Below, in pieces: positions 16,855 to 63,796 of a DNA stretch of 63,796 bases (within the stretch, counting starts at the first letter, position 1; each line of letters begins with the position of its first letter). The position numbers and the translations under genes are program-made. A model generated the notes under the pieces. The model was not told the DNA's origin, did no database searches, and saw nothing but the letters and a program-made list of their open reading frames with translations. The stretch spans positions 62,205 to 126,000 of the forward strand of contig NW_020847337.1 of the NCBI RefSeq assembly GCF_003704095.1, written 5' to 3'. This DNA comes from Pocillopora damicornis (taxonomy: Eukaryota).

Positions 16855-16886
<32 letters not shown>

Positions 16887-31997: not shown

Positions 31998-32052
<55 letters not shown>

Positions 32053-37718: not shown

Positions 37719-39970
37719 TGAAGGGAAATTTGTTGCTTTTCTGGGCTTATTATTACCACTTAAATATATAATTTTTGTACTTGTGGCTGTATCATAGGAA
37801 AAAAATAATTTTTGTACATTGTATACTTTAGGTTTATCAAATTATAGCCATTTAAAATTCAAGTAGCCTTATTTCAGGTATGTTTGAAGCGTGGCAGTTA
37901 AAAGATTCTTTGGTTGTTACATTAAAGGTGGCTGTTTGGGTGGGTCAGTTTTTTAAAAATATTAAGCTACTATTTAATGAAATTGAAGGCGAACTTTTGC
38001 TTTTGAAAACACAGACATGTGGGAAGACTTCTGTTTTACAACATTGTAGGTTATGGGTCAGTATTTTTGTAGGATTTTTTCAGTGTTGCTTGTAGCACTT
38101 TTCTTTTCCAATGTTGTGTTTCACATGTCAATTGTTAAGTCATATGGTAAAATGAAAATTCATATTTCATTGGGAAGTTTTGTTTCTGAAGGAAGCCCCT
38201 GTGCACAGGAGCGTAATCTTCTGGAGATAGATCACAATTTTTTATTGTGAAGCTGTTCTTCAAATTAACATGCTGTATTTTTCATAGTGATTTACCATTG
38301 TTTTGCTGCTATAAAATTCTATGCCTTTTTTTTTCTCTTGTGCTGTCTAGTAACATTGTTAAGTTTCCCCAGTTACATTTTACTGTTGCAGTATAACTGT
38401 GATTGGTAGCATTCGTTGTTTGGTTTCAAAGTTCACATGGAAGTCATTTTGTAAATACAGTATCCATTGTTCCATTTCCAATTTTTCAGGGACATGTTTT
38501 ATATTCTAGTTATGCTTTGTTCATCTTGTTTGTTGAAAATCAACATTTGAGTAGTTATCATAAAGTTTTACCCCTTATATTGCTTCATCAGGCCATTCAT
38601 TAGAAAACTCTATGTTTGTTGTTTGGTAAATCATATTTGGGTTAATAGTATCAAAACAAGTTTTAACTTTGTCCACTGCATGTCATCAAACTTATTGCCT
38701 TCAGACCCTAAAGAGCTTATATTATTAATTAGCTAACCTACAATTGTTATTTACTTAGTAAAAAGGGAGTATTTTTCTACTAAGTTTCCAAAAAAACTCC
38801 AATATTAACTTTTTTTAAAACATCATATTAACTCACCAATCTTAACTTTGTGGGTGTTGAATGTTTTTCAAAAAGAGTAGCACAAGTCCCCCTACCAGAT
38901 TTGGACAATTTAAGGGCAACATAAAATTTTTTGCAAATAAGCTCAGTGTTTATGGTTTTGGAAAATGTAAATTATGTTTTCCAAGCCATTTTCGTTAGAA
39001 AATTCTGTTACAGGCTATTTTGTACATTTAACACAGTAAAATTTTCAAAACAGTTTGTTTTGCAACATTGTTCATGGAGATGCTGGGATTGGATCATATT
39101 TACGAATTAGCAGTAGAAAGCTACTGCAAATGTTAATCTGTGTATGGTGACGAATTTAAAATATTTGAGGTACCATCAGATGTGGTGCATTCTTTGAAGT
39201 TATAGTACAGTTTGATTTTAAATCTTGCTCGTCTGTGGCCTCTCTCAGAGCCACACAACTGCAAGTTTTCCATACATTGTTTGTTATTTAGAAGTACTAG
39301 AATTGTAGTTTTCAAATTTGTTCTTTTGGTTCACGTTCAGATTTGTACAGTGTAATTAGTTTTTTTTTTTTGACGGGATGTTAGTAATAGAACATCTCAA
39401 AAGTATAACAGAACGAGCGCATTTTTCTTTAGCGTATTGCATAATGTATGGCTTCTCTTTATAACTTAATCTCATAACACGGTTGTTAATAGTGGTTGGT
39501 TAATTTTAATGCAGTAAAGTGTTGTGGAAAAACGTTGTTTCGGAGCCAAAGTTGAGCCGCTTGCTTAAAACATACCTTAGAATGAAGATATGTAGATACA
39601 GTATTAATAAAATGTTTTGTAAAGAAATAAACACATATCACGTTAAAAGTAATAGCCAAAAATATATATGATGTAAATAGTGATTTTAAGGTAACTCTGT
39701 CTTTGAATGGTGGATCCTTCTGGCAATAAACATGTAATTTAGCATTTCTTGTTGGGCATGAATTGATATACGTTCTGTCATAAATGATTTAGCTTTGGTG
39801 ATGAGACTCTGAAGGTCACTTCAATTTTACATCTCATATTAGAGTTATGTTGCAATCTTGAAGCATTTCATGCAACAGTTACTCTAATATGCGGTCTTTT
39901 CACGCAATGCGGGAGAGAGCGCGTTGCGTGACTAGATAAACGACAGCTGCGAAGGAGAGGTTGTGTTTCG

Positions 39971-40186
39971 TAACTCTGTACACCCCAACATCATCATGCA
40001 GATTCTCCATACTGTTCTCCATACATGTCTCAAGACGCTGACATAAAGAATTTGTTTCGTAACCATCGAGCGCCTCGTCAGTTGGTGATCATTTCCGTTT
40101 TTCTTTTGACCTTTACCTTTCATTCTATGGATGATACTATAAAGAGAAATTAGATGCCTGTCACTCCTCCTGGGTTAAAGTGTTAA
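39971..40186. repeat. ~210-bp TIR-bounded dispersed repeat
   Basis: taactctgtacaccccaacatcatcatgcagattctccatactgttctcc...gggttaaagtgttaa; same family as 7495-7705. Confidence 0.6.
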
Positions 40187-42014
40187 GCTGCATGTGTTTA
40201 TCCAAGTTCAGTCCAGGTTTGCTGCATCAATAAAGGTTTTGGGTATCTTTTGACGGCAAGTTACACTAACGGTTAGGATACTTCACAGCTCGGACATTTT
40301 TCGTGAAGGATCCACTGTTTTAAAATCATTTTGTTATTTTTGAGTGGTACTGAGTCACGATTGCATGACGTATGACGCAGGGTACGAGCTTTTTTCACTC
40401 TTCTTACGGTGGAGAGGAGGTGGCACAGATTCAGACAAATAATAAATGTTGCAATTACCAAATTATATTTTGAATCTTTTTTGCGTGAAACTTATTTATA
40501 GAATCATTTTTAAAAAAACCTTGCGCTGCGGAAACACTCGNNNNNNNNNNCCAGGCATGAATATTGACCGGTCCCTTGGCCTGAAACCATATAAATTATA
40601 TCATTTCACATCACTCAGCTTTCAGTTCTCTTTTGAGAGAACTTCATTTCATGTTCCATGTCTTTAAGCCTAACTTTAAAGCTTCTTGCCTTCACCTGCC
40701 ATGAAATAGAACAAGAGAGCAGCAGTTTAGATTAATTCCTCATGAAGATTCACGTTGGTCGGTGATCCGGCGACTAGCATACTCTGGTAGCCACAGGATT
40801 CGCCAAATCTTTCCCGCTCGCAAAGACAGCCATAATTTGAAGTTGTATTTTACTAGTTCCGATCAAGCAAGTCCAACATATAAAATCTAACAATCAGAGA
40901 GGGACTGCCGGCCATGAGAATCGAAGTGTTTATTTAGTTGAAGGGAAAAAACAACTGCCCTTCATTCAGTATGTCAGAATAATTAAGAATAACTAACATC
41001 ATCTTAATGATTGCAGTAAAATAAATGGTCTAAGCAACAAATTTTTTTAAAAAAATTGGTACAAATACCTGAAGTCTAACGAAGTCCGGTAGAAATTTTT
41101 GTACGAAAATGTTCCTAGTAACCGTGCTCGGATTAACCTTCTTAACTCCTAATCTACGATTTTTTTGGTACAAAAATAAGGGATATGTGGTCTTCCCTTT
41201 AAATTCGAAGAGGTATTTTTAACTTGAGGGCCATCATCAAATATCAATCTAGAATCCTAAACTACACAGTTGTAGACTGCTCGTGTGACCAGCTATAAAA
41301 ATCTTTATCGTCAGTAAAAATAAGAAAATGCTAATTTCCCGAGGAATTAATTTAATGAAGTCAAAAAAATTAGCGTTACCCCGAAGTCGATATATATATT
41401 GGGCATGAAGATCACTTCATAAAAATACTTGAGACAGATCCACGCAAAAAAACCAAACAAATGAAACCGAAAAAAAATTTTGAAAACCTTTGAAAATCTT
41501 ACTCTATTAGAGAAAACGTTTTATCATCACGCTTGAGATTTCATATGATTTCCTGAAAAAATCAGAACAATTATGTACGAGTATACTTTTTAACCTTGAA
41601 AAAAACTCTGCGCATTTGACATGATAGAGAGCCTCTTAGAAAAACAATTACTCCATATTTGCTAGGGCTACACGACGTATCACTTTCGAAAGAATATTAC
41701 TTAAAATTTGCTTTGCTTGATATATTAATCGCTTTCGAAAAACATTAGTTACAATATGCTTGGCTTGATTATTTAACTATTCCGTTTGAGAGTTCAGCAA
41801 CTGCTAACTGTTCATCATCTCTACTTTATGAATTGTTCTGTCCCTGCTGCGCTCTTTACAGGAATGTTTAACTTTGACAATAGCTGAGTACTTGAAATTT
41901 AGCTCGCACGCGTCTCTCGCAGATGGCTTCCTCTTTCTATACGGTAGCAGTTCACAGTTTCTAGCTTTGCTCTGTCCAGCACATTCCGTTACAGCGGGTT
42001 TACTTGATTCATGG

Positions 42015-42083
42015 CTATTTGGTTGTAGCAGACACAGGCCAATTTGCAAAATCAAACGTCACGTTGTCGCCAATCAGCATAAA
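42015..42083 (-). CDS. Last 22 codons of a CHAT-domain gene paralogue; the remainder is lost in the N gap
   Basis: FMLIGDNVTFDFANWPVSATTK* is near-identical to the C-terminus FMLIGDNVTFDFANWPVSTSTK* of the + strand CHAT ORF. Confidence 0.75.
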   Translation of the reverse strand, partial: FMLIGDNVTFDFANWPVSATTK

Positions 42084-42184
42084 NNNNNNNNNNNNNNNNN
42101 NNNNNNNNNNNNNNNNNNNNNNNNNNNNNNNNNNNNNNNNNNNNNNNNNNNNNNNNNNNNNNNNNNNNNNNNNNNNNNNNNNNT

Positions 42185-42712
42185 TTGATTGGAGATCGCG
42201 CGACAAAGCAGGCTGTACTTCAAGCAATACATTCAGTTAGTCTGATCCATCTAGCTGCTCATGGTGATGCTGAAAGAGGAGAGATTGTCCTTTCCCCAGA
42301 GTGTCCCGCTGACTATGTTCCACGAGAAGACGCCTACCTCTTGACTATGGCGGACATTTCACGAATTAAGCTGCAAGCTAAACTGGTTGTGCTTAGCTGC
42401 TGTCACAGTGCACGTGGACAGATTAAAGCCGAGGGAGTTATTGGAATCGCTCGAGCGTTCTTAGGATCCGGTGCTCGCTCAGTGTTAGCGGCACGGTGGG
42501 CTTTAGATGACACAGCCACAGAGAAGTTCATGACTTGTTTCTACGAGCACTTGTTCCGCGGTGAAAGCGCCAGTGAATCTCTTCACGAGGCCAGGAAATG
42601 GATGAGAAACAATGGCTTTGTGGAAGTCTCCAAGTGGGCTTCTTTTATGCTGATTGGCGACAACGTGACATTTGATTTTGCAAATTGGCCTGTGTCTACT
42701 TCAACCAAATAG
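42185..42712 (+). CDS. C-terminal CHAT (caspase HetF associated with TPRs) protease domain of a TTC28-like TPR-CHAT protein, 5' truncated by a gap
   Basis: ATKQAVL, LIHLAAHG (His 42260-42262), AKLVVLSCCHSARG (Cys 42401-42403), EGVIGIARAFLGSGARSV...W.LDD.AT..FM..FY, WASFMLIGD. These are canonical CHAT motifs with the His/Cys dyad intact. Confidence 0.88.
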   Translation: MIGDRATKQAVLQAIHSVSLIHLAAHGDAERGEIVLSPECPADYVPREDAYLLTMADISRIKLQAKLVVLSCCHSARGQIKAEGVIGIARAFLGSGARSVLAARWALDDTATEKFMTCFYEHLFRGESASESLHEARKWMRNNGFVEVSKWASFMLIGDNVTFDFANWPVSTSTK

Positions 42713-44159
42713 CCATGAGTCATGTAAACCCGCTGTGACGAAATGTGCTGGACGGAATAAAGTTAGAAACTGTTAATTGCCACCGTACAGAGAGAGAAAA
42801 CCATCTGAAAAGACGTCTGCAAGTTAAATTTGAGGCACTCAAGCAAAACTTTCCTGTAAAGAACGCAGCAGGGACACGAAAATTCATAAAGTAGAGATGA
42901 TGAACTTTTAGCAGTTACTGAACAAACGCAAGAGCATTCCCTTTTCGAAAGCGAATGGTTCAATAATCAAGCCAAGCACATTGTAGCTAATTTTTTTCGA
43001 AAGCGGTTAATACATTGAGCAAAGCAAATTTTAAGTAATATACTTAAAGTGATACGTCATGTAGCTTTAGCAAGTATGGAGTAATTGTTTTTATAAGGGG
43101 CTCTGTATCATATAAAATGTGCAGAGTTTTTTTCAAGGTTAAGCAGTATACTCGAACTTAGTTGTCATGATTCTGTCAGGAAATCATTTGTCATCTTAAG
43201 CAGGATGATAAAACGTTAGGGTTAGATTTTCAAAGGTTTTCAAAATCTTTTCGGTTTCATTTGTTTGTTTTTTTTTTGCGAGAAATTATAAGTCGTCATA
43301 TGTGAAGTACTTTTAGAAAGTGATCTCCATACGCAATGTATATATCAACTTTGGGTAACGCTAATTTTTTTGAAATTAGCATTTTCTTATTTTTACTGAC
43401 GATAAAGATTTTAATAGCTGGTCTTACGAGCAGTCTACAGGTGTCTAGTTTAGGATTCTAGATTGATTTTGATGATGGCCCTCCAGTTAAAAATACCTCT
43501 TCGAATTTATGGGTAAGGTCAAGTTTATCTTAATTTTGTAGGAAAAAATCGAAAAAACAAGATTAGGAGTTAACAACATTGATGTGAGCACGGTTACCAG
43601 TACCATTTTCGTACAAACATTTATACCGGACTTCGTTAGATTTCAGGTATTGTATTCAATTTGCAAAAACTTGTTACCTAGACCATATATTTTACTACAA
43701 TCATTAAGATGTTCAGATTAACACTGTTGTGAGTAAAAAGCACTTAATTCTTCGTCATTACGACATACCGAATGATGGACAGTTGCTTTTTTCTTCATCC
43801 AGATATATACTTCGATTCTGACACCGGTAGTCCATCTCTGATTGTTGGATTTGATATGTTGGACTTGCTTGAACGGAAATAGTAAAATACGCCTTCAAAT
43901 TATGGCTGTCTTAACGAGCGGAAGAGATTTAGCGAATCCTGTGTTCTGATCGGCTACCAGAGCATGCTAGTCGCTGGATCGCTGACCAACATGAATTCAT
44001 CTAAACTGCTGCTCACTTATACTATTTCATGGCAGGTGAAGGCACAAAGTTACTAAGTGAAGGTGAAAGAAATGAAACATGATATGGAAGTTCTGTTAAG
44101 AGAGAATTGAAAGTAGAGTCATATAAAGTGATATAATTACTCGGGGCTTTCAAAACGAA

Positions 44160-46727
44160 ATGCCGAATGGCATCCTCAGCCGCCGTTTTCGGCGGCTGAG
44201 GATGCCATTCGGCATAAGTTCTGCGCCTGAGATATGGCAGCGGAAGATGCATGAAGCAATTGAGCGATGATTTCCTGGTTTAGGGATTTGGAGACACAGT
44301 AGATGAAGCAGTGAAGGATCATGACCAAAATTAAACCGCTTTCCTACAAAGATGCCGTGATTTGAATCTGACACTTAATCTTTAGAAGATTAAGGTTTGC
44401 CTATCACAAGTACCATTCATGGGCCACTTACTCACAGCAGATGGTGCTGTGACTGACCCAAACAAAGTTCGTGCCATGCCGTATGTGACATGCCTACTCC
44501 AACAGATGTCAAATCCTTTAAAAGATTTCTTTGGATGGTTACTTACCTAGCAAAGTTCTTACCACACCTGTCCAGTGTCTGCGAACCGCTAAGGCGACTG
44601 GAGCTTAAGGATGCTGAATAGAGGTGGCTGCCCGTTCACGATGAAGTAGTCCAAAGTATTAAGATTCTTGTTTGTGAAGCTCCAGTGGTGAAGTTTCATG
44701 ATGTTAATCGGAAAGTCGCAATTGAAAGTGACGCGTCTCTCAGTGGATTTGGCGCCTCCTTACTCCAGGAGGGTCAGCCCGTTGCATTCGCCTCAAGAGC
44801 TCTCACTCCAGCGGAAGGTTGCTACGTTCAGATTGAGAAGGAACTTCTCTCTGTTGTTTTTGCCTGTGAGAGGTTCAATTCGTACATGTATGGTCGAGAT
44901 GTGGTGCATGTTAAGACAGATCACCAGCCCCTTAAAGCGATCTTTAAAAAGGACCTCGGCTCTACTCCCAAGCGTCTCCAGAGGATATTGTTGTGCTTAC
45001 AGCGTTACAAACTTGACGTAAAATACCAAAAAGGAAGGTTGATGGTTATGCCTGATCCCTTGTCCCGAGCCTCGACGAAACTCTCGCACAGACCGAGTTT
45101 TGCAATGAGCTCAAGGAGATAGTGCTTGTGGAGGATCTCCCCATTTCAGAAGCACGACCGAAGGAATTCAAGGAAGGGACTGCCTTGCATGACAACCTTT
45201 AGATCCTTATGCCCGCTGTCCTAGAAGGTTGGCCTAGCATTCTGGATAAAGTTCCGGCTGAGGTCAAGCCATACTGTGACTTTCAGTTTCAAGATGAAAT
45301 CACAGCCCAAAATGGTTTGCTGTTTAAGAGTGAGTGCCTCATTGTACTAGCCAAGTTAAGGAAAGAAATGATGGAAAAGGTCCATCTTGGTATTGAGGGC
45401 TGCCTTCGACGAGCCAGAGAAGTGTTTTACAAGCCGTGCATGAATGTTGAGCTTAAAGATTTCATTCTCAAATGTGATATCTGTAGTTCGTATAAGCAAG
45501 CTCTGCATCGAGAACTACTAATGCCCCATGAAATCCCATCAAGGCCTTGGAAAAAGGTCGGTGCAGATTTGTTCCCGTTTGACCAGCGCCACTACCTGAT
45601 TACTGTGGATTGTTACTCTTCTTTCTTTGAGGTGGACACGACAGCTTCCAGAACTGTTATTGAGAAATTGAAAATGCAGTTTAGCCGCCATGGTATCCCG
45701 GAGATAGTTATTTCTGACAATGGACCACAATGTACTTCTGCAGAGTTTGCAAAGTTTCCAGGTGACTGGCTCTTTCAACATATTACTACCTCTCCTCGAA
45801 ATCCGCGAAGTAACGGAAAGGTTAAAGGTGCTGTGAAAATCAGGCAGCGCATGGAAAGTTTGACCCATATCTTGCCTACTTGACTATTGTAACACGCCTA
45901 CGGAATTTGGCTCATCCCCAGCGTAAAGGCTGTTCAGCCGGAGAACACGCAATTTGTTACCCCTGTCAAGATGCAAGATAAGCTGATTAACTCTAAGAAA
46001 AATCAGGCTTTCTACTGCAACCTGAAAGGCAAAGCACAACCTGAGTTGCAACCTGGACAAACTGTCAGGATGAAGAGGCCCAACGAATCTACGTGGACGG
46101 AAGCTGTTTGCAAGAAAATGACTGGCCCACGTTTCTATGCGGTTGTATCGGGTGGTCGAACCTACCGACGAAATCACCGACAGCTGCGAATGGTGCCACT
46201 ATCTGATTCTCCGCCTGTTGCGAAATAAGCAGCTGAGCCTTTGCGATCACTGCCCCTGTTAGATTTCCACCCAGTTGCAAAAACAGCAACTGAGCCCTTG
46301 CAATTAGCATTTCAAGCAGACCCCCTACCTATTGTGAAAACTGCTGCTGAACACGTAGAACTTGCGCTCCTTCATACTGTCACAAAGAGTGGTCGTATTT
46401 GTCAAACGACCAGCACGTTTTAGTGAGTTTGCGATTTTGACTCAGTGCTTTTCGGAAGCTTTATTTTTTAAACACTGTTGTTGTTGTTTTTGTTGTTGTT
46501 TGCTGGTTTTTTTTTTTTCACGAAGGAACTCAGTCGCAGTTTGCAAGAACTCAGTTAAGACACCCCTTCTTTCAAAGGGGAAGATGTTGTGATACTGCAT
46601 AAATTAGCATATATTTCTGTATCACGTGACTTATTATTCTGTAATTAGACCTTGTGGTGTTTCAATCAGCCGCCATTAAAATAGTTGAGTTGTGTTTACG
46701 CTCGGTGTCCTTACGTTGATCATTACA
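44160..46727 (+). mobile_element. Degenerate, 5'-truncated Ty3/Gypsy LTR retrotransposon (RT fragment, RNase H, integrase, PPT, putative 3' LTR)
   Basis: RT remnants RLRMPFGISSAPEIWQR and DDFLV, then FMGHLL; RNase H SDASLSGFGA.LLQ..QPVAFASR, QIEKELL, TDHQPL; integrase HLGIEGC..RARE, CDIC, PWKKVGADLF, ISDNGPQ. Many stops and frameshifts. PPT aaaggggaaga at 46574-46584 is followed by TGTTGTGAT...ATCATTACA (46585-46727) containing ATTAAA. Confidence 0.88.
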
Positions 46728-49714: not shown

Positions 49715-50739
49715 GATATAAGAGGACTTTCAAGAAGCTGGCCCTCACCATTAACAATGCGGGATACGCATTTCTTCGCCCGCGGGAAGATTTGAGACAG
49801 TTGAGGAAAGATTTGCCGAGATTTGTCTGGCACTTATGCTATCAGTGCTACGCCCCTTACAGACCTCGCACCGGCTCTCGTCGCTCCACGCCTCCAACAT
49901 TCCCGTGGGCAAAGAATCGCACGTGCCAAAGCGCTTATATTGAGGGCCTGGAGCTGAGCTCTATGTTAACTTGAAGTTGATGTGCGAAACCTGTCAATGA
50001 GCTTAGAAAACAGAAGAAAAACTTCCACCAAACTATTTATAGTGACTGCCTTCTTCCTCAAGCAAAACATGTTCAAGTTTTTTTTCACTGCTCTCTTACA
50101 TCAAAAGTTGAATAAGACCTAAAAGAATATGGCCAATCAGAGTTAGTGGAGTCCCTGTGCTAACTCTGATGGAAGTTATGGAATTTTTTGTTGTTTATGT
50201 CCAGAGGAGTATTATATTAAAAATAGCTTTGTTCAATGATAAGTTTTAAGAAAAGAATAAACTGGTCATCTCATTTACAGCTCTTTTAACGCATCCTGTC
50301 TAATCAGGTGTAATCATGTGAGTTTGCTGGTTTAGTTGAAAAAAAAATTGATGTCTGAGTTTCCACCAGCTCAGCACAAAAGGGCCACAGGCCAAAAGAA
50401 ACGGTAAGCCTGGGGACAAGAATGACTGCGAAAGTGACAGAAAGAAGCATAAGATCACGTTCTATTGGCATTTTCCGTGAGTGACAGCTGACATGTGTTA
50501 GGAAAAAACTGAACAGAGTAGCGGAGGCGGTTAACTGTATTTATTTATGGCGAGGCATTGAAGTCTACAGGTTTTGGTAAGTACTGATTGTATTCAAAAA
50601 ATGATACAGTTTAACTTTGCCACTGTCAGTGCCTTTACGTAGCTTACATACATCATTTTTGTTTGGAGCGTCAGTGTTCTATCATGCTATATTCAATGTT
50701 ATGATCTATGTCTTCGATAAAAACTGAGAGTTAATTTCT

Positions 50740-53700
50740 ATCAAATAGAAATACAATCACAAATAGCGAGGTCGAATTGAAAAATTATAAATACCATTTG
50801 GAATATTGAAATTTTTTGCGATTGGCTGAATCGCATATCACCAGCACTGGTGATATGATTTCTGTAGCAACTATTTGGATCCGACCTCTTCAAAGTTTTT
50901 GTCACACATCGTACTGTCGAGCTAATCTTGCACAGGAAGGAATAGAGTATTGAGGAAGCAAAAATGAAATTTATATATTTTTTCGTTCTCCAGAAGATAG
51001 GGGAAGATGTTTCCTCTTTAGTTCAGGTATTTCGGTTTTTTATATCTAACTTATATAACTAATGATGGATTTGAGCATGCAACAATAAAACAATTTATTC
51101 TGTTTTACAGGGAACGTCAGCCTTTGGTGTTCATTTATTTTGACCGCTTGGATTTTCATTACAAGATTGATCAAAGTACAACTGATCCTTCTGCTTTCAA
51201 AAGGTGAGCCATCTCCGCGATTTTCCACGCTTTTCGTTTTCTATTGAGTGTGATTTTCATAATCAAGATACTAAGTAAGTTCCTAAATCAAGAAAACGGA
51301 TTAACCTTATCCTGCGAGTTTCACTACGATTATCACTTCACTAAGAGATACCTTTTAAGTGTTAATCAAGATAAGACTTCGATGAAGTAACGAGTGGGTG
51401 ACATTANNNNNNNNNNNNNNNNNNNNNNNNNNNNNNNNNNNNNNNNNNNNNNNNNNNNNNNNNNNNNNNNNNNNNNNNNNNNNNNNNNNNNNNNNNNNNN
51501 NNNNNNGTAAAATTGATTTCTGTAGAGATATATTCTGTTCCGACCTCGTCAAAGTTTTTGCTGCACGTCGCGCTGTCGAGCTAATCTTGAGAAGAACGGA
51601 ATAGAGTATTAAAGAAGTGTAAATGACATTGGTATATTTTCGTTCTCCAGAATGAAGATAGTGAAAGATGTTCCCTCTTCAGTTCATGTATTTCGGTTTT
51701 TTGTATCTATTTTATATAACTAATGACAGATTTGAGCATGCAAAAATGAGAAAGTTTCCTTGGTTTTACAGGGAACGTCAGCCTTTAGTCCCCATTTCTT
51801 TTTGACCGCTTGGATTTTTATTACAAGATTGATCAAAGTGCAAGTGAACCTTCTGCCTTCAAAAGGTAAGCCATCTCCGCGATATTCCGCTCTTCAAGAC
51901 TTTTCATTTTCTTGCGGGTGTGATTTGCATGATCAAGATATTAAGTAATTTAATAAATAAGGAAAACGGATAAAGTTAAACGTTCAAGTTTCTCTAAGAT
52001 GATCACTTTACTAAGAGTTACCCTTTTAAGTGTTAATCTAGGTACGCCTTAGAGAAAGTAACGAGTGAGTGGCATTAAGAGTCAGGATCTACATAGATCA
52101 ACACTCTCTAAAAAATATACAACAATTGATAACATTCTGGAGAGTGGAGAGAAGGGGAATGAACCTAAACCATACTTATGCAGCGGGATCCTTGAAGCTA
52201 ATCTCCTGAAAAGTCCCATCGGTCATCCCTGCTATTCTCAGTTTTATTTCCGCTTCGCTTTGGCTACGAAACTAGCAATTTGAGAGAGCTTCAACGCGCC
52301 ATAAAAGCGATGACGAATACATGTAGTAATGATGTTAATACATTGATGTCTAGAACACCTAAATTCTCGAGCCAACCTCGGGCAGGATTTTCTTGTGAGA
52401 TAAATGGAAGTCCAATCATGAAAGAATTAATAAATTCATCAACTTTTTCCTGATTCATAAGTGGGAAATAGAGAAGAACGTTGAGCAGTGTTCCCCTTAA
52501 GGTACTTGTGTTTCGGTTTTGAATTTTACAAACAATGATGCATTTGAGCATGCAAAAATGAAAAAAAATTGTATTTTGTTTAGTACAGGGATCGTCAGCC
52601 CTTAAGTGTTCATTGCTTTTAAACGGTTGGATTTTCATCACGANNNNNNNNNNNNNNNNNNNNNNNNNNNNNNNNNNNNNNNNNNNNNNNNNNNNNNNNN
52701 NNNNNNNNNNNNNNNNNNNNNNNNNNNNNNNNNNNNNNNNNNNGATCAAAGTACAACTGATCCTTCTGCTTTCAAAAGGTGAGCCATCTCCGCGATTATC
52801 CACGCTTTTCGTTTTCTATTGAGTGTGATTTTCATGATCAAGATACTAAGTAAGTTCCNNNNNNNNNNNNNNNNNNNNNNNNNNNNNNNNNNNNNNNNNN
52901 NNNNNNNNNNNNNNNNNNNNNNNNNNNNNNNNNNNNNNNNNNNNNNNNNNNNNNNNNNNNNNNNNNNNNNNNNNNNNNNNNNNNNNNNNNNNNNNNNNNN
53001 NNNNNNNNNNNNNNNNNNNNNNNNNNNNNNNNNNNNNNNNNNNNNNNNNNNNNNNNNNNNNNNNNNNNNNNNNNNNNNNNNNNNNNNNNNNNNNNNNNNN
53101 NNNNNNNNNNNNNNNNNNNNNNNNNNNNNNNNNNNNNNNNNNNNNNNNNNNNNNNNNNNNNNNNNNNNNNNNNNNNNNNNNNNNNNNNNNNNNNNNNNNN
53201 NNNNNNNNNNNNNNNNNNNNNNNNNNNNNNNNNNNNNNNNNNNNNNNNNNNNNNNNNNNNNNNNNNNNNNNNNNNNNNNNNNNNNNNNNNNNNNNNNNNN
53301 NNNNNNNNNNNNNNNNNNNNNNNNNNNNNNNNNNNNNNNNNNNNNNNNNNNNNNNNNNNAGGTAATGTCTATCAAATAGAAAGACAATCACAAATACCGA
53401 GGTCGAATTAAAATCTTGAAATACCATTTTGGATATTGAAATTTTCTGCGAACGACTGAATCGCATATCNNNNNNNNNNNNNNNNNNNNNNNNNNNNNNN
53501 NNNNNNNNNNNNNNNNNNNNNNNNNNNNNNNNNNNNNNNNNNNNNNNNNNNNNNTCGTCAAAGTTTTTGTCACACGTAGTACTGTCGAGCTAATCTTGAG
53601 AAGGACGGAATAGAGTATTAAGGAAGGATAAATGAAATTCGTATATTTTTTCGTTCTCCAGAATGAAGATAGTGGATGATGTTCCCTCTTTTTTTCATGT

Positions 53701-55300
53701 ATTTCGGTTTTTTATAACTAACTTATATAACTAATGATGGATTTGAGCATGCAAAAGTGAAACAATTTATTCTGTTTTACAGGGAACGTCAGCCTTTAGT
53801 GTTCATTTGTTTTGACCGCTTGAATTTTCATTACAAGATTGATCAAAGTACAAGTGAACCATCAGCCTTAGAAAGGTAAGCCATCTCCGCGTTGTTCCAC
53901 TGTTCAAGACTTTTTATTTTCTAATGGGTGTGAAATGCATGATCAAGATACTGAATAATTTACTAGATAAGGAAAACGGATGAAGTTAAGCGTGCGCGCG
54001 AGTTTCTCTAAGATGATCACTTTACTAAGAGTTACCCTTTTAAGTGTTAATCTGGATAAGACTTAGATAAAGTAACGAGTAGGTGACATTAGAGTTAGGA
54101 TCTACATAGATCGACACTCTCTAAAAAATATACAACAATTGATAACATTTTGGGGAGGGGAGGGAGGGGGCATGAACCTGGACCATACTTATGAAGCGGG
54201 ATCCTTGAAGCTAATCTCCTGAAAAGTCTCATCAGTCATCCCTGCTACTCTCGCATTTTTATTTCCGCTTCGCTTTGGCTAGGAAACTAGCAATTTGAGA
54301 ACACTACAATGCGCCATGAAAGCGATGTTGATGATAATTTGATGTCTAGAACACCTAAAAACTTGGGCCAACTTCGAGCAGGATTTTCATGTCAGAAAAA
54401 TGGAAGTCGAATCATGAATAAATTCATCTACTTTTTTCCTAATTCATAAGTGGAAAATACAGAAAGACGCTGANNNNNNNNNNNNNNNNNNNNNNNNNNN
54501 NNNNNNNNNNNNNNNNNNNNNNNNNNNNNNNNNNNNNNNNNNNNNNNNNNNNNNNNNNNNNNNNNNNNNNNNNAATTCATCTACTTTTTTCCTAATTCAT
54601 AAGTGGAAAATACAGAAAGACGCTGAGCAATTTACCCCGAATATTAATTGTTCCCCTTAAATTACTTGTGTTTCGGTTTTGAATTTTATAAACAATGATG
54701 TATTTGAGCATGCAAAAAGGAAAAAATTGTACTTGTTCAGTACAAGGATCGTCAGCCCTTACGTGTTCATTGCTCTTAAACGGTTGGATTTTCATCACGA
54801 GATCGATCACAGTTCAGTTAAATAGGGTATTTTCCAGTGTTTGGGTGTGGGGATCGACTCTTTACTGGTGAACTTTTCATTTTCTAATGAGTGTGATTTG
54901 CATCATTAATAACAAAGACATTATATAATTTACTATATAAGCTAAACAGATGAAGTTGTTAGTGTGAGTTTCTGCCAAGACGATTATTTTAGTAAATGTT
55001 ACCCTCGAAAGTTTTCATCTTGGTGGAAGGTGGAAAAGAAAAGTTCAGTAGGTTACTCTGAGCTTCAAGTGCTTCGGTTTAGGTATTTGTATTTCGGTTT
55101 TGTTAGTTGAACTTAGATAAACATTGATGGATATGAGCATGCAAATGAAACTTTTTACTTTGTTTTACAGGAAACGTCAGCCCCTAGTGTTCATTGCGTT
55201 TTAACGGTTGGATGTTCATCACAAGATCGATCACAGCACTATTGAAGTTTCTGTCTTTAAACGGTAGGGTATATATAAGTTATGACTGACTGAATGTTTT
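50740..55300 (+). repeat. Nested tandem duplications carrying repeated ~93-nt exon-like modules upstream of the TPR genes
   Basis: Module ...tgagcatgcaaa...ttttacAG|G(G/A)AACGTCAGCC...AAAAG|GT(G/A)AG occurs at 51111-51203, 51772-51865, 52589-gap, gap-52778, 53783-53875, ~54747 (degenerate) and 55171-55263. Larger blocks ~51900-52500 and ~53900-54470 are paralogous. Confidence 0.8.
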
Positions 55301-56184
55301 ACAATCATAAAATGTGGGGCAGGAAATGCAACTGATTGACCCCTTGGGCCCCCCCCCCCCCCCACCCTCCCCCTCCCCCTCCCTCTCCCCCAGTATCTAC
55401 CGCTTGTAGTTCCAGTTTGTGGTAATTTGAAGGAAAATGAAAACTGTGAACAAGAGTATGTGACAAAGGTTTTTCATTTTTCCAGGGATAAATTTCATTC
55501 AGGTACCCTCGCTTGAATCAAAATGAACACGGAACATGTCTAACTTCAAACAATAAGTTCAATGATTTATGTGACATCGTAATGAGCATCTCAATGATGT
55601 GCGTGACAGTGTTATGAATACCTCAGTGGAACAAACGGTAATAAATTTTCTTGGTGTGTTTCTTTGTACAACACACACACACACAAAACACAAAATTGGA
55701 TTTATTACATAAGTACACGAGGATTCCTGATGAAAAGAAATGAAAAGAGTCGAAGAAGAATCCAATTAGATCTGTAACTACACATCGAGTGATTTAACAA
55801 AATTTGACAAATACCGAAGTGGAAACTAAAAAGGTTAGGATAAGGAACCCTATGTACCAAATGTTTTAGGCTATATATGGAGTAACAAAAAAAACTTGGT
55901 TTCAACCATTTAAATTCAGTTACCCCTACTTCATTCCAGCAAAACGTTCTAACACGAACGGCGCAATCATTAAAAAAAAAAACAGATTTTTGTGAGATGA
56001 AGCAGGAAGTGCAATCACACTCATACTGGTTCCAGTCTCGTAAACGCTTCATTTCAATACAGGGTAGGACCTCCGTCGAGATGAGAAAACCAAGATTCCT
56101 GAAAAAGTTCGCATCCATGAACCCTTGTACAGGAACTTTCGAGTGTCATATGCCTGATCTACATTTTTTTTTCCAAACTTACAG

Positions 56185-58887
56185 TGATCAAGGCGATATG
56201 AAAAACACAGAAGAGGAATTCACCACGTTAGCTATCAAAATAGGTGTAACTGTCGCCATTTTCCTTCTCAACAATGGTTTGGCCTTGAAAGCCATCGAGC
56301 TGTGCCAAGAAAGCTTGATTTTACTGAACAATGGTGATTTAACCGCGGACAGTCCAGTTGCCAAGTCATTTGACGAACGCATCCGCACCACAGTGAAAAG
56401 GGCGTGGCTCACTCTATGCAATTCACCAGGTATTGAAGAATACCTCAGGGAACTTTTACTTCACCCTGAAGAGGAAAAGAAATTTTATGAATCAGCAATA
56501 AATGTAATGAAAATAACCGAAAACAGACAAAAAGAAGCGGAATATTATAGAAGACTAGGAGTGCTTCTGTGTTTCTTAGGAGAATATAATAAAGGGAAAG
56601 AATATTTGGAGATAGCACTCGCTATCCAAATAAAAATTGGCGACAGACGTGGAGAGGCAACAAGCTACACGGACATTGGAATACTGTTCATGTCGCTTGG
56701 CAAATATGACAAGGCCCGCGAATACCTGGAGAAAGCTCTCGCTATCCAAATAGAAGTTGGCGACAGACATGGAGAGGCAACAAGCTACACGAATCTCGGA
56801 GCACTGTTCATATCGCTTAGCAATTACGACAAGGCCCGCGAATACCTGGAGAAAGCTCTCGCTATCCAAATAGAAATTGGCGACAGAAATGGAGAGGCAA
56901 CAAGCTACCAGAGCCTCGGAAGAGTGTTCCTGTCGCTTTGCAAATACGACAAATCCCGAGAATACCTGGAGAAAGCTCTCGCTATCCAAATAGAAATTAG
57001 CGACAGAAATGGAGAGTCAACAAGCTGCGCGAACCTCGGAGCACTGTTCACATCGCTTGGCAAATTAGACAAGGCCCAAGAATACCTGGAGAAAGCTTTC
57101 GCTATTCCAATAGAAATTGGCGACAGACATGGAGAGGCAACAATCTATGGGAACCTCGAAACAGTATTCGGGTTGCTTGGCAAATACGACAAGGCTCAGG
57201 AATACCTGGAGAAAGCTCTCGCTATCCAAATAGAAATTGGCAACAGACATGGAGAGGCAACAAGCTACCAGAGCCTCGGAACAGCGTTCATATCGCTTGG
57301 CAAATACGACAAGGCCCAAGAATACCTGGAGAAAGCTCTCGCTATCCAAATAGAAATTGGCAACAGAAATGGAGAGGCAACAAGCTACCAGAGCCTCGGA
57401 ACAGTGTTCCAGTCGCTTGGCAAATACGACAAGGCCCGAGAATACCTGGAGAAAGCTCTTGCTATCCAAATAGAAATTGGCAACAGAAATGGAGAGGCAA
57501 CAAGCTACCATAGCCTCGGAACAGTGTTCCAGTCACTTGGCAAATTCGCCAAGGCCCGAGAATACTTAGCGAAAGCTCTTGTTATCCAAATAGAAATTGG
57601 CGACAGATATGGGGAGGCAGCAAACTACTCCAACCTTGGACAACTGTTCATATCGCTTAGCAAATACGGCAAGGCCCGAGAATACTTAAAGAAAGCTCTC
57701 GCTATCCAAATAGACATTGGCGACAGAACTGGAGAGGCCACAAGCTACGTGAACCTCGGAGCACTGTTCATATCGCTTAGCAAATACGACAAGGCCCGAG
57801 AATACTTGGAGAAAGCTCTCGCTATCCAAATAGAAGTTGGCGACAGACATGGAGAGGCAACAAGCTACTCGAACCTCGGAGCAATGTTCGTATCGCTTAG
57901 CAAATACGACAAGGCCCGAGAATACCTGGAGAAAGCTCTCGCTATCCAAATAGACATTGGCGACAGAAATGGAGAGGCCACAAGCTACGTGAACCTCGGA
58001 ACAGTGTTTCGGTCGCTTAGCAAATACGACAAGGCCCGAGAATACTTGGAGAAAGCTCTTGCTATCCAAATAGAAATTGGCAACAGAAATGGAGAGGCAA
58101 AAAGCTACAATAACCTCGGAACACTGTTCATATCGCTTTACAAATACGACAAGGCCCGAGAATACTTGGAGAAAGCTCTGGCTATCCAAATAGACATTGG
58201 CGACAGAATTGGAGAGGCAGCAAGCTGTGGGAACCTCGGAACACTGTTCAAATCGCTTGGGAAATATTACAAGGCTCAGGAATACCTGGAGAAAGCTCTT
58301 GCTATCAAAATAGAAATTGGCGACAGAAATGGAGAGGCAACAAGCTACCAGAACCTCGGAACAGTGTTCCAGTCGCTTGGCAAATACGACAAGGCCCGAG
58401 AATACCTGGAGAAAGCCCTCGCTATCCAAATAGAAGTTGGCGACAGATATGGAGAGGCAACAAGCTACTCGAACCCCGGAGCACTGTTCATATCGCTTAG
58501 CAAATACGACAAGGCCCAAGAATACCTGGAGAAAGCGCTCGCTATCCAAATAGACATTGGCGACAGAAATGAAGAGGCCACAAGCTACGTGAATCTCGGA
58601 ACAGTGTTTCGGTTGCTTGGCAAATACGACAAGGCCCGAGAATGCTTGAAGAAAGCTCTCACTATCCAAATAGACATTGGCGACAGAAATGGAGAGGCCA
58701 CAAGCTACGTGAACCTCGGAGCACTGTTCGTATCGCTTAGCAAATACGACAAGGCCCGAGAATACTTGAAGAAAGCTCTCGCTATCCAAATAGACATTGG
58801 CGACAGAAATGGAGAGGTAACAAGCTACCAGAACCTCGGAACAGTGTTTCAGTCGCTTGGCAAATACGAAAAGGCCCGAGAATACTT
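56185..58887 (+). CDS. TTC28-like TPR-array protein, copy 1 (unique N-terminal region + ~20 tandem 40-aa TPR units); 3' end lost in gap
   Basis: Acceptor ttacAG at 56183-56184 and likely ATG at 56198 (MKNTEEEF). Open through to the gap with exact 120-bp periodicity; consensus GDRnGEATSYxNLGxxFxSLGKYDKAREYLEKALAIQIEI. Confidence 0.88.
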
Positions 58888-59585
58888 NNNNNNNNNNNNN
58901 NNNNNNNNNNNNNNNNNNNNNNNNNNNNNNNNNNNNNNNNNNNNNNNNNNNNNNNNNNNNNNNNNNNNNNNNNNNNNNNNNNNNNNNTAAGTGTTCATTG
59001 CTTTTAAACGGTTGGATTTTCATCACGAGATCGATCACAGTTCAATTAAATAGTGTATTTTACAGTGTTTGGGTGTGAGGATCGACTCTTTACTGGTGAA
59101 CTTTTCATTTTCTAATGAGTGTGATTTGCATCATCAATAACAAAGACCAACAAAGACACTATGTAAATTACTATATAAGCAAAACGGATGAAGTTAATAG
59201 TGTGAGTTCCTCTGAAACGATTATTTTACCTAATGTTATCCTTGAAAGTGTTTATCCTGGTGGAAGAAAAAGAAAATTTCAGCACACTTCTCCAAACTTC
59301 AAGTTCTCCGGTTTAGGTATTTGTATTTCGGTTTTGTTAGTCTAACTTTGATAAACGTTGATGGATATAAGCATGCAAAATGAAATAATGTACTTTGTTT
59401 TACAGGAAACGTCAGCCCCTAGTGTTCATTGCGTTTTAACGGTTGGATGTTCATCACAAGATCGATCACAGCACAATTGAAGTTTCTGTCTTTAAATGGT
59501 ATGGTATTTATAAGTTATGACTGACTGAATGTTTTACAATCATAAAATGTGGGGCAGGAAATGCAACTGATTGACTCCTTGGACG

Positions 59586-59643
<58 letters not shown>

Positions 59644-60410
59644 ATTATCTACCGCTTGTAGTTCCAATTTGTGGTGATTTGAAGGAAACTGAAAACTGTG
59701 AACAAGAGTATGTGACAAAGGTTTTTTCATTTTTCCGGGGAAAATTTCATTCAGGTACCCTCGCTCGTATCAAAATGAACGCGAAACATATCTAGCTTCA
59801 AACAATAAGTTTAAATATTTGTGTGACATCGTAATAAGCATCTCAATGATGTGCGTGACAGTGTTATGAACACCTCGCCTGTGGAACAACAGTAATAAAT
59901 TTCCTCGGTGTGTTTCTTTGTAGAAACACTCACAAAAAAACACAAAATTGGATTTATTACGTAAGATCACGAGGATTCCTGATGAAATGAAAAGAGTCGA
60001 AGAAGAATCCAATTAGATCTGTAACTACACATCGAGTGATTTAACAAAATTTGACAAATACCGAAGTGGAAACTAAGCAGGTTAAGATAAGGAACCCTAT
60101 GTACCAAATGTTATAGGCTATCTATGGAGTAACAAAAAAAACTTGGTATCAACCTACTTCATTCCAGCAAAACGTTCTAACACGAATGGCGCAATCATTA
60201 AATAAAAATTAGATTTTTGTGAGATGAAGCAGAAAGTGCAATCACACTCATACTGGTTCCAGTCTCGTAAACGCTTCATTTCAATACAGGGTAGGACCTC
60301 CGTCGGGATGAGAAAACTACGATTCCTGAAAAAGTTCGCACCCATGAACCCTTGTACAGAAACTTTCGAGTGTCATATGCTTGATCTACTTTTTTTTTCC
60401 AAACTTACAG

Positions 60411-63400
60411 TGATCAAAGCCATACTGATATGAAAGACACAGAAGAGGAATTTACCACGTTAGCTATCAAAATAGGTGTAACTGTCGCCATTTTCCTTCT
60501 CAACACTGGTTTTGCCTTGAAAGCCATCGAGTTGTGTCAAGAAAGTTTGATTTTATTAAACAACGGTGATTTAAGCGCGGACAGTCCAGTTGCCAAGTCA
60601 TTTGACGAACGCATCCGCACCAGAGTGAAAAGGGCGTGGCTCACTCTTTGCAATTCACCAGGTATTGAAGAATACCTCGAGAAACTTTTACTTCACCCTG
60701 AAGAGGAAAAGAAATTTTGTGAATTAGCAATAAATGTCATGAAAATGACCGGAAACAGACAAAAAGAAGCAGAGTGTTATAGAAGACTAGGAGTGCTTCT
60801 GTGTTCCTTAAGAGAATATAACAAAGGGAAAGAATATTTGAAGATGGCACTCGCTATCCAAATAAAAATTGGCGACAGAAATGGAGAAGCAACAAGCTAC
60901 GCGAGAATTGGAATACTGTTCATGTCGCTTGGCAAATATGACACGGCCCGAGAATACCTGGAGAAAGCTCTCGCTATCCAAATAGAAATTGGCGACAGAA
61001 GTGGAGAGGCAACAATCTATGGGAGCCTCGGAACACTGTTCCAGTCGCTTGGCAAATACGACAAGGCCCGAGAATACCTGGAGAAAGCTCTCGCTATCCA
61101 AATAGAAAATGGCGACAGACATGGAGAGGCAGCAATCTATGGGAACCTCGGAATAGTGTTCCAACGGCTTGGCAAATACGACAAGGCCCGAGAATCCCTG
61201 GAGAAAGCTCTCGCTATCCAAATAGAAAATGGCGACAGACATGGAGAGGCAACAAGCTACACGAACCTCGGAATAGTGTTGATATTGCTTGGCAAATACG
61301 ACAAGGCCCGACAATACCTGGAGAAAGCTCTCGCTATCCAAATAGAAATTGGCGACAGAAATGGAGAGGCAACAAACTACACGAACCTCGGAACAGTGTT
61401 CCAGTCGCTTGACAAATACGACAAGGCCCGAGAATACCTGGAGAAAGCTCTCGCTATCCAAATAGAAATTGGCGACAGTCATGGAGAGGCAAAAAGCTAC
61501 GGGGGCCTCGGAACAGTCTTCCAATCACTTGGCAAATACGAAAAGGCCCGAGAATACCTGGAGAAAGCTCTCGCTATCCAAACAGAAATTGGCCACAGAA
61601 ATGGAGAGGCAAAAAGCTACGCAAACATTGGAATACTGTTCATGTCGCTTTACAAATATGACAAGGCCCGAGAATACCTGGAGAAAGCTCTCTCTATCAA
61701 AATAGAAAATGGCGACAGAAATGGAGAGGCAACAAGCTACACGAACCTCGGAACAGTGTTCATATCGCTTGGCAAATACGACAAGGCCCGAGAATACCTG
61801 GAGAAAGCTCTCGCTATCAAAATAGAAATTGGCGACAGAAATGGAGAGGCAACAGGCTACACGAACCTCGGAACACTGTTGGAATCGCTTGGCAAATACG
61901 ACAAGGCCCGAGAATACCTGGAGAAAGCTCTCGCTATCAAAATAGAAAATGGCGACAGACATGGCGAGGCAACAATCTATGGGAGCCTCGGAAAAGTGTT
62001 CCAGTCGCTTAGCAAATACGACAAGGCCCGAGAATACCTAGAAAAAGCTCTCGCTATTCAAATAGAAACTGGTGACAGAAATGGAGAGGCAGCAAGCTAC
62101 GGGGGCCTCGGAACAGTCTTCCAATCACTTGGCAAATACGACAAGGCCCGAGAATACCTGGAGAAAGCTCTCGCTATCCAANNNNNNNNNNNNNNNNNNN
62201 NNNNNNNNNNNNNNNNNNNNNNNNNNNNNNNNNNNNNNNNNNNNNNNNNNNNNNNNNNNNNNNNNNNNNNNNNNNNNNNNNNNNNNNNNNNNNNNNNNNN
62301 NNNNNNNNNNNNNNNNNNNNNNNNNNNNNNNNNNNNNNNNNNNNNNNNNNNNNNNNNNNNNNNNNNNNNNNNNNNNNNNNNNNNNNNNNNNNNNNNNNNN
62401 NNNNNNNNNNNNNNNNNNNNNNNNNNNNNNNNNNNNNNNNNNNNNNNNNNNNNNNNNNNNNNNNNNNNNNNNNNNNNNNNNNNNNNNNNNNNNNNNNNNN
62501 NNNNNNNNNNNNNNNNNNNNNNNNNNNNNNNNNNNNNNNNNNNNNNNNNNNNNNNNNNNNNNNNNNNNNNNNNNNNNNNNNNNNNNNNNNNNNNAATACG
62601 ACAAGGCCCGAGAATACCTGGAGAAAGCTCTCGCTATCAAAATAGAAACTGGCGACAGACATGGCAAGGCAACAATCTATGGGAGCCTCGAAAAAGTGTT
62701 CCAGTCGCTTAGCAAATACGACAAGGCCCGAGAATACCTAGAGAGAGCTCTCGCTATTCAAATAGAAACTGGCGACAGAAATGGAGAGGCAGAAAGCTAC
62801 GGGAGCCTCGGAACAGTGTTTATATCGCTTGGCAAATATGACCAGGCCCGAGAATACCTGGAGAAAGCTCTCGCTATCCGAATAGAAACTGGCGACAGAA
62901 ATGGAGAGGCCAGAAGCTACGTGAACCTTGGAGCACTGTTCCTATGGCTTAGCAAATACGACAAGGCCCGAGAATACCTGGAGAAAGCTCTCGCTATCCG
63001 AATAGAAACTGGCGACANNNNNNNNNNNNNNNNNNNNNNNNNNNNNNNNNNNNNNNNNNNNNNNNNNNNNNNNNNNNNNNNNNNNNNNNNNNNNNNNNNN
63101 NNNNNNNNNNNNNNNNNGACAAGGCCCGAGAATACCTGGAGAAAGCTCTCGCTATCCAAATAGAAATTGGCAACAGAAGTGGAGAAGCAACAATCCACGG
63201 GGGCCTCGGACCACTGTTCATATCGCTTGGCAAATATGACAAGGCCCAAGAATACTTGGAGAAAGCTCTCGCTATCCAAATAGAAACTGGCGACATAAAT
63301 GGAGAGGCCAGAAGCTACGTGAACCTTGGAGCACTGTTCGCATTGCTTGGCAAATACGACAAGGCCCGAGATTACCTGGAGAAAGCTCTCGCTATCCAAA

Positions 63401-63796
63401 TAGAAATTGGCGACAGAAATGGAGAGGCAACAAGCTACACGAACCTCGGACCACTGTTGGAATCGCTTGGAAAAATCGACGAGGCCCGAGAATACCTGGA
63501 GAAAGCTCTCACTATCAAAATAAAAACTGGCGAAAGACATGGCGAGGCAACAATCTATGGGAACCTCGGAAGAGTGTTCCGACGGCTTGGCAAATACGAC
63601 AAGGCCCGAGAATACCTGGAGAAAGCTCTCGCTATCCAAATAGAAAATGGCGACAGTCATGGAGAGGCAATAAGCTACTCGAGCCTCGGAGCACTGTTGA
63701 CATCGCTTGGTAATTATGACAGGGCCCGAGAATACTTGGAGAAAGCCCTACATATTTTCAGGAGAATTGGCCAAAGAGAAGGAGAGGTAGGCACTT
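60411..63796 (+). CDS. TTC28-like TPR-array protein, copy 2; interrupted by two N gaps and running off the window end
   Basis: Acceptor at 60409-60410 and ATG at 60430 (MKDTEEEF). The 120-bp TPR units continue in each contig piece (to 62181, 62595-63017, 63118-63796). The last unit diverges (EKALHIFRRIGQREGEVG), suggesting the end of the homogeneous array. Confidence 0.87.

Follow-up and report, generated by a model that had tools for sequence, protein, structure and literature searches.

The window analysed here is a 63,796-nucleotide stretch of the genome of the coral Pocillopora damicornis (assembly GCF_003704095.1, contig NW_020847337.1, positions 62,205 to 126,000 of the forward strand). 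Near its 3′ end lie two tandem genes with long arrays of tetratricopeptide repeat (TPR) units, which we call gene B and paralogue C. We consider it probable (about 0.7) that the array in gene B (array B) serves a coral TPR-CHAT protein as its ligand-binding TPR solenoid; the protein is one of a tandem pair within a family numbering hundreds. The units each comprise 40 residues in a helix-turn-helix arrangement. Their framework and helix-B residues are under purifying selection, and a stripe on helix A, together with the adjacent position 19, is under diversifying selection. When placed by register, the selected stripe appears to coincide with the canonical concave, ligand-contacting positions of TPRs.

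Selection on the repeat units

Tandem Repeats Finder located the array at 56599-58885, with a period of 120, 19.1 copies, 86% matches and 0% indels. It is read in the frame of the open reading frame (ORF) 55997-58990, which is open from 55997 up to an assembly gap, with 963 codons intact. Counted from the residues GDR, 18 complete 120-bp units occupy 56639-58798, followed by 29 codons of a 19th. A preliminary description of this DNA had reported 19 consecutive units without indels in a register starting at 56638. The absence of indels was confirmed, but the register starts one base later and, because array B ends at the N gap 58888-58987, 19 units (18 complete and one partial) are a lower bound. 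The term "near-identical" used there was too strong: the mean pairwise identity among the units of array B was 86.3% for DNA and 75.5% for protein.

Most of the variation in array B was at unit positions 4, 8, 11, 12, 15, 18 and 19. The residues listed earlier for positions 4, 8, 11, 12, 15, 18 and 21 matched the sequence exactly, but the list of variable positions had overlooked 16, 19, 27, 39 and 40. Position 21 does vary; it sits in the turn between helices A and B, and selection on it was supported neither in array B nor in the pooled run described below. A groove signature of seven residues was different in each of the 18 units of gene B, and none of these signatures occurred in gene C. 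As had been noticed before, changes fell on codon positions 1 and 2 with position 3 fixed; this held for all changes at codons 4, 8 and 15.

Helix B had been described as almost invariant even at synonymous sites. This was contradicted by a synonymous diversity of 0.257 in helix B versus 0.187 in helix A, with silent variants at codons 23, 27, 30, 33 and 34. The ratio of nonsynonymous to synonymous differences (pN/pS, or omega) in helix B was 0.24. Helix B is therefore maintained by selection at the protein level and not by homogenisation of the DNA alone.

Units from both genes entered the selection tests, 18 from gene B and 17 from paralogue C. In pairwise Nei-Gojobori comparisons, pN/pS was 2.3-2.6 at the variable positions named in the preliminary description, compared with 0.37-0.58 at the remaining codons. 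To avoid picking sites by their variability, we also fixed a set a priori, namely the canonical concave positions (unit positions 8, 11, 15, 18 and 19), and divided the pN of this set by the array-wide pS, with a bootstrap 95% confidence interval (CI). The ratio was 2.44 in array B (95% CI 2.01-3.03) and 3.43 in array C (95% CI 2.42-5.06). Six exposed control positions in helix B gave 0.58 and 0.44, respectively. Of our results on selection, this one, which needs no tree and uses pre-defined sites, is the most robust.

Parsimony counts on trees assigned 13, 9 and 14 replacement changes to codons 4, 8 and 15, respectively, and no silent change to any of the three. Compared with the global silent rate, the parsimony counts were significant after Bonferroni correction at codons 11, 15 and 18. 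A minimum-spanning count of distinct codons per site, which gave an overall omega of about 1 with only codon 18 significant, was too conservative and was set aside.

Models M1a and M2a were compared in our own implementation of the GY94 likelihood, with branch lengths fixed at M0 proportions. For the pooled units of B and C, the log-likelihood was -1363.11 under M1a and -1339.19 under M2a, giving a likelihood-ratio test (LRT) statistic of 47.9 (p = 4e-11). M2a placed 19% of codons in a class with omega2 = 3.9, with a posterior >0.95 at positions 4, 11, 15, 18, 19 and 40. Array B alone gave an LRT of 24.3 with sites 4, 11 and 18, and array C alone an LRT of 25.1 with sites 4, 8, 11, 12, 15, 16, 18, 19, 21, 37 and 40. 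Neutrality was rejected in each array separately, and sites 4, 11 and 18 were recovered in each. The earlier expectation of dN/dS above 1 at the variable helix-A sites was thus borne out by the a priori set, by parsimony and by M1a/M2a in both arrays. Among 120 coral homologues, within-protein entropy peaked at positions 18, 4, 8, 37, 15, 9 and 11.

Position of the selected sites in the TPR fold

Eight units together matched the Pfam family TPR_12 (PF13424) with E = 9e-75. A Pfam TPR_1 match placed unit position 8 at canonical TPR position 2, and a HMMER alignment to a solved consensus TPR placed unit positions 3-4 at TPR positions 33-34. By this register, unit positions 8, 11, 12, 15, 18, 19 and 4 correspond to TPR positions 2, 5, 6, 9, 12, 13 and 34. 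The most variable positions of TPRs are 2, 5, 9, 12, 13, 33 and 34, all on the concave face, and HOP contacts its ligands through positions 2, 5, 6, 9, 12 and 13 (Magliery and Regan, PMC1261162). Concentration of the variation on the face of helix A that forms the ligand groove of TPRs, as proposed before, was supported by this register to canonical concave positions.

In an AlphaFold2 single-sequence model (mean predicted local distance difference test score, pLDDT, of 83), helix A was predicted to span unit residues 3-19, and helix B residues 23-40. Positions 4, 8, 11, 15 and 18 form an i, i+4, i+7, i+11, i+14 stripe on the predicted helix A, with positions 12 and 19 adjacent to it. The helical periodicity pointed out earlier agrees with this model, in which all five positions would lie inside one helix.

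The nearest solved structures were the TPR domains of LGN/Pins (GPSM2; PDB 3SF4, 6HC2 and 4A1S), with about 30% identity (Foldseek E ~4e-16; HMMER E = 3.5e-39). The HMMER alignments to LGN were unbroken across 160-180 residues, so that the 40-residue spacing agrees as well. In LGN/Pins, extended peptides lie within the superhelix's inner groove and asparagines form hydrogen bonds to the main chain of the ligand (PMC3438535). Array B resembles these proteins in its unbroken 40-residue register. Unlike array B, LGN has eight diverged repeats without internal near-identity; it has conserved endogenous partners and no CHAT domain.

The Pocillopora meandrina locus and alternative explanations

An orthologous gene (protein P0001) was found in a 24-kb N-free stretch of an 11-Mb contig of Pocillopora meandrina. 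Its identity to the gene B locus is 99% in the upstream flank and 92.7% in the gene region. Units 1-10 are collinear between the two species, with 114-119 of 120 nucleotides identical. Each of these units is closer to its orthologous unit than to any paralogous unit, except for unit 7, which ties at 115 with a unit of the same array. Beyond them, window units 11, 12, 13 and 14 match P. meandrina units 12, 15, 16 and 20, and window units 15-18 best match P. meandrina units 11, 12, 13 and 10. The P. meandrina array has extra units, and a three-unit block is present in it twice, 1440 bp apart, with 95% identity. The suggestion that repeat number and order change was therefore upheld between the two species, which differ past unit 10. 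These differences fit duplication and loss of units by unequal recombination.

The P. meandrina array lies at 9751-12300 of the extracted locus (L033). One of its frame changes is caused by one additional T, located in the unit that corresponds to window unit 8, and the public P. meandrina gene model begins downstream of the first frame change.

Several observations weigh against reading array B as a ligand-binding solenoid under diversifying selection. Between orthologous units there were 38 replacement and 11 silent differences (overall omega 0.99), and the enrichment of replacements at the selected sites was weak (p = 0.04). The orthologous units are 95-99% identical between the species, which means that the groove residues are mostly stable. 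An overall omega of about 1 between orthologues, together with four frame changes in the P. meandrina array, makes decay of this particular locus possible. As for the tests themselves, recombination of units is at odds with the assumption of one tree, so that the LRT can be inflated, the trees were built on sequences of 120 bp, and CpG sites in codons 11, 18 and 19 may supply extra mutations. In six older arrays of the same genome the ratio for the concave set was only 0.86-1.48 (control positions, 0.26-0.75); the direction was that of arrays B and C, and the signal was weaker where silent divergence was higher. Only one of the five AlphaFold2 models was confident, and the mapping to the concave face comes from the register and published work rather than from measured geometry. 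No coral member of the family has a known ligand, substrate, protease activity or phenotype.

The alternative that survives best, although we consider it unlikely, is a housekeeping scaffold of the kind proposed for human TTC28 or for LGN, in which each duplicated unit adapted once to a different stretch of a fixed, non-repetitive endogenous partner and the elevated dN/dS records past subfunctionalisation rather than a continuing recognition of non-self. This could explain why the groove residues of orthologous units 1-10 were kept between the two Pocillopora species, at 114-119 of 120 nucleotides. The closest solved structures, LGN/Pins, do bind endogenous peptides, and a mitotic role has been reported for human TTC28 (cited in PMC12314368). 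A fixed scaffold is difficult to reconcile with the hundreds of tandem coral paralogues whose copy number differs between haplotypes (PMC12314368), with the lack of a groove signature common to two adjacent paralogues, with unit order and number differing between close species, and with an omega of about 1 between orthologues.

Slightly less probable still is an absence of positive selection, with the exposed positions unconstrained and the rest homogenised by gene conversion. Concave positions are the most variable ones in all TPRs (PMC1261162), recombination inflates likelihood-ratio tests, and the older paralogue arrays are near a ratio of 1. Neutral sites, however, cannot exceed the synonymous rate, and the pre-defined concave set reached 2.4-3.4 with bootstrap intervals above 1, whereas equally exposed helix-B sites stayed at about 0.5. 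The replacement changes at codons 4, 8 and 15, unaccompanied by any silent one, are also contrary to this explanation.

Public sequence data bear on the last two alternatives. Stretches specific to single units were found exactly in contigs from three other DNA studies and from one polyA RNA run (Logan contigs, 100-400 bp). Contigs from independent samples cross the junctions 56336-56737, 56972-57218 and 57505-57660 exactly or nearly so. Contigs this short confirm the unit sequences and a few junctions, not the whole order, copy number or expression level, and apparent sequence variants among them may come from paralogous units. The units of the array and part of their order are real, and the number of units counted in the window is a minimum.

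Gene B might instead be a decaying or non-functional copy in which the pattern is a relic of the history of the family. We regard this as improbable. The four frame changes in the P. meandrina array, the overall omega of 0.99 between orthologues and the loss of the 3′ part of gene B from this assembly would be in line with decay, but the frame of gene B is intact over 963 codons up to the gap, omega in helix B is 0.24, and exact unit-specific contigs are present in a polyA RNA library. The P. meandrina frame changes could be those of a pseudogene or assembly indels. An artificial array, in which a short-read assembly collapsed or shuffled paralogous units, is hardly credible: the assembly is a scaffolded short-read assembly with 11 N gaps in the window, array B terminates in a gap, the public contigs over it span only 100-400 bp and the scaffold order near 35-43 kb conflicts with the P. 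meandrina contig, but the first ten units recur in unchanged order in another species, within 24 kb of gap-free sequence on an 11-Mb contig, and the independent contigs span the three junctions given above.

Gene structure, the TPR-CHAT family and possible function

The features of the two genes, and a CHAT fragment located elsewhere in the window, are as follows (coordinates, strand, feature).

56165..56184, +, polypyrimidine tract and AG, likely the splice acceptor of an intron in the 5′ untranslated region of gene B (by direct reading; the motif is also present before paralogue C at ~60393-60411)
56198..56518, +, start codon (ATG 56198) and N-terminal helical region of gene B (107 amino acids)
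56519..56638, +, degenerate first TPR unit that keeps the 120-bp register (matches TPR_12 and TPR_2 weakly)
56639..58798, +, 18 complete 120-bp (40-residue) TPR units (Tandem Repeats Finder, Pfam)
58799..58887, +, partial 19th unit of 29 codons, cut by the gap (unit alignment)
58888..58987, no strand, assembly gap of 100 N that removes the rest of gene B (N run)
58988..60429, +, upstream region of paralogue C, part of a tandem segmental duplication (sequence comparison)
60430..63796, +, paralogue C (ATG 60430), with the N-terminal region, 17 similar units and a single one that has diverged
42185..42712, +, C-terminal part of a CHAT domain that contains an intact catalytic dyad (His and Cys) and a stop codon (matches profile positions 126-289 of PF12770, E = 1e-38)

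Stretches of N were left as they stand. The N-terminal region of gene B is 89% identical to that of paralogue C; no Pfam family was above threshold in its 107 amino acids, and coral homologues begin at the equivalent Met. Past the gap, the DNA shares 87% identity with 54760-55969, which lies upstream of gene B. The remainder of gene B is therefore missing in the gap, and the DNA beyond it is already the region upstream of paralogue C. Paralogue C has internal N gaps at 62182-62594 and 63018-63117. The units flanking the first of these (window 61951-62770) have the same groove signature and are identical at 116 of 120 bases, which could reflect a recent duplication or a single unit that was assembled twice.

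The 3′ part of gene B falls within the N gap; a CHAT domain was seen in paralogue C and in the P. meandrina gene. Beyond the window, gene C continues in one frame through diverged TPRs and a linker into the start of a CHAT domain (PF12770 over profile positions 8-71, 32.3 bits with the cut-off at 24), inside which the contig ends. The gene called at the orthologous P. meandrina locus also carries CHAT (PF12770). The coupling to a CHAT protease that had been thought probable is supported by both genes. The CHAT fragment at 42185-42712, which directly follows an N gap and so has no certain owner gene, matches the P. meandrina orthologue at its 3′ end with 88.8% identity. It might be the end of gene B, but the scaffold is unreliable there.

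In the window, the scaffold order and orientation of 35101-43274 conflict with the P. meandrina contig, where the sequence downstream of the orthologous gene aligns at 96-98% with the minus strand of window 40194-35101. At the N gap 42084-42183 two contig ends meet, both of them within a CHAT 3′ end or shortly beyond it, and 42644-44138 is an inverted copy (78%) of 40594-42083. Upstream of gene B, 50397-55969 contains repeated segments of ~1 kb and six N gaps; these repeats are also found upstream of the P. meandrina orthologue (L033 3403-8295). Retrotransposon remnants with ORFs for reverse transcriptase-RNase H and integrase lie at 44685-45883 (+). Unrelated neighbours are exons of a chondroitin N-acetylgalactosaminyltransferase (CHGN/Fringe-like), an armadillo-repeat ORF and an exon of CoA-transferase family III, among 12746-18510 (-), 2921-3757 (-) and 20399-21022 (+). 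There are homopolymer runs of 58 C at 59586-59643, between paralogues B and C, and of 65 T at 31999-32063.

Gene B is a member of the published coral TPR-CHAT (TTC28-like) family. Among the homologues listed, all the top ones carry PF12770 and are TPR-CHAT proteins of 1100-1500 amino acids with at most 76% identity. Nearly all the named homologues listed are from Pocillopora, Stylophora or Oculina, some of them annotated "TTC28-like". The same genome (234.35 Mb in 4393 contigs) has at least 32 matches to the N-terminal region. With at least 32 paralogues, one-to-one orthology of gene B with human TTC28 is unlikely; a separate, conserved canonical TTC28 orthogroup is described for acroporids in PMC9145168. 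Internal repeat identity ranged from 47% to 92% among 120 homologues and was at least 80% in 10 of them.

According to PMC12314368, coral species have 276-362 TPR-CHAT genes each, in tandem clusters with differences in copy number between haplotypes. The expansion is also described in PMC9145168 and PMC6208414. The genes studied here resemble this family in the long N-terminal TPR_12 array of gene B, the C-terminal CHAT of its relatives and their tandem clustering. The locus had been put forward as an undescribed system, but the expansion of the family is published in these three papers and the evolutionary mode is published for the TPRs of fungal NLR proteins (PMC4986451). PMC12314368 and PMC9145168 cover copy number, tandem duplication and TPR length, and dN/dS above 1 in the groove and the rearrangement of units appear to be additions. 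A term search of both papers found no site-level analysis of repeats in coral TPR-CHAT proteins, an absence that is not proof.

In Podospora, the TPR, ANK and WD repeats of fungal NLRs are internally conserved and polymorphic in repeat number, and a few concave-face positions of the TPRs are positively selected (Dyrka et al. 2014, PMC4986451). Array B is similar to them in its tandem similar units, its differences in repeat number and its selected TPR positions. Its 75.5% protein identity (86.3% for DNA) is below the >85% protein identity over at least 100 amino acids used in that study. Polymorphism of repeat number and order was found here between species only, and positive selection at concave positions was found with the concave face mapped by register. 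Gene B differs from the fungal genes in its animal host, in a probable CHAT protease as effector and in having no NACHT or NB-ARC. No Pfam match to NACHT or NB-ARC was detected in the N-terminal 214 amino acids of the ORF or in paralogue C, and the homologues have only TPR and CHAT. In the absence of such a NOD domain, gene B is not an NLR.

Two proteases offer parallels in domain composition. A fungal TPR-CHAT protein (HET-Q2-like; Q2L-6), proposed to be a sensor-protease, cleaves the gasdermin clustered with it upon removal of the TPR part (Clave et al. 2022, PMC8851545). Unlike the fungal locus, gene B is not adjoined by a gene for gasdermin or another candidate substrate, and none was found among the ORFs of at least 120 amino acids in the window. 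Csx29 of type III-E CRISPR ("Craspase") likewise has a TPR region fused to a CHAT protease and is switched on by a binding event. The likeness is at the domain level: in contrast to the coral gene, Csx29 is prokaryotic, is activated through Cas7-11 and target RNA, and has few TPRs with no internal identity.

If array B functions as a solenoid of this kind, its superhelix would bind an extended peptide or protein in the inner groove. The mostly conserved Asn at unit position 12 may hold the backbone of the ligand, while the variable residues would read its side chains and give specificity. Binding could then control the C-terminal caspase-like CHAT protease, which would cleave a substrate, by analogy with the fungal TPR-CHAT protein (PMC8851545) and Csx29. 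The size of the family and the pattern of selection favour fast-changing partners (pathogen, symbiont or conspecific non-self), and this is the least certain step. More tentatively, and with considerable doubt, the coral TPR-CHAT genes as a whole might form a NOD-independent intracellular recognition repertoire. In such a repertoire the groove would carry a "code" of shuffled 40-residue units, and a pathogen, symbiont or allogeneic ligand would free the caspase-like CHAT protease to start a death or signalling cascade, which would make these genes an animal equivalent of the repeat-protease sensors of fungi and bacteria.

The gain from this analysis is moderate because the idea extends published fungal work and the family has already been described. 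The evolutionary mode is known from fungal NLR repeats, and we found no report of it for coral TPR-CHAT genes in the papers searched. Corals have hundreds of these genes without an assigned role, and groove-specific diversifying selection together with unit rearrangement would make them candidate receptors for specific recognition. This would bear on coral immunity, symbiont choice and allorecognition, with concrete residues and constructs to work with.

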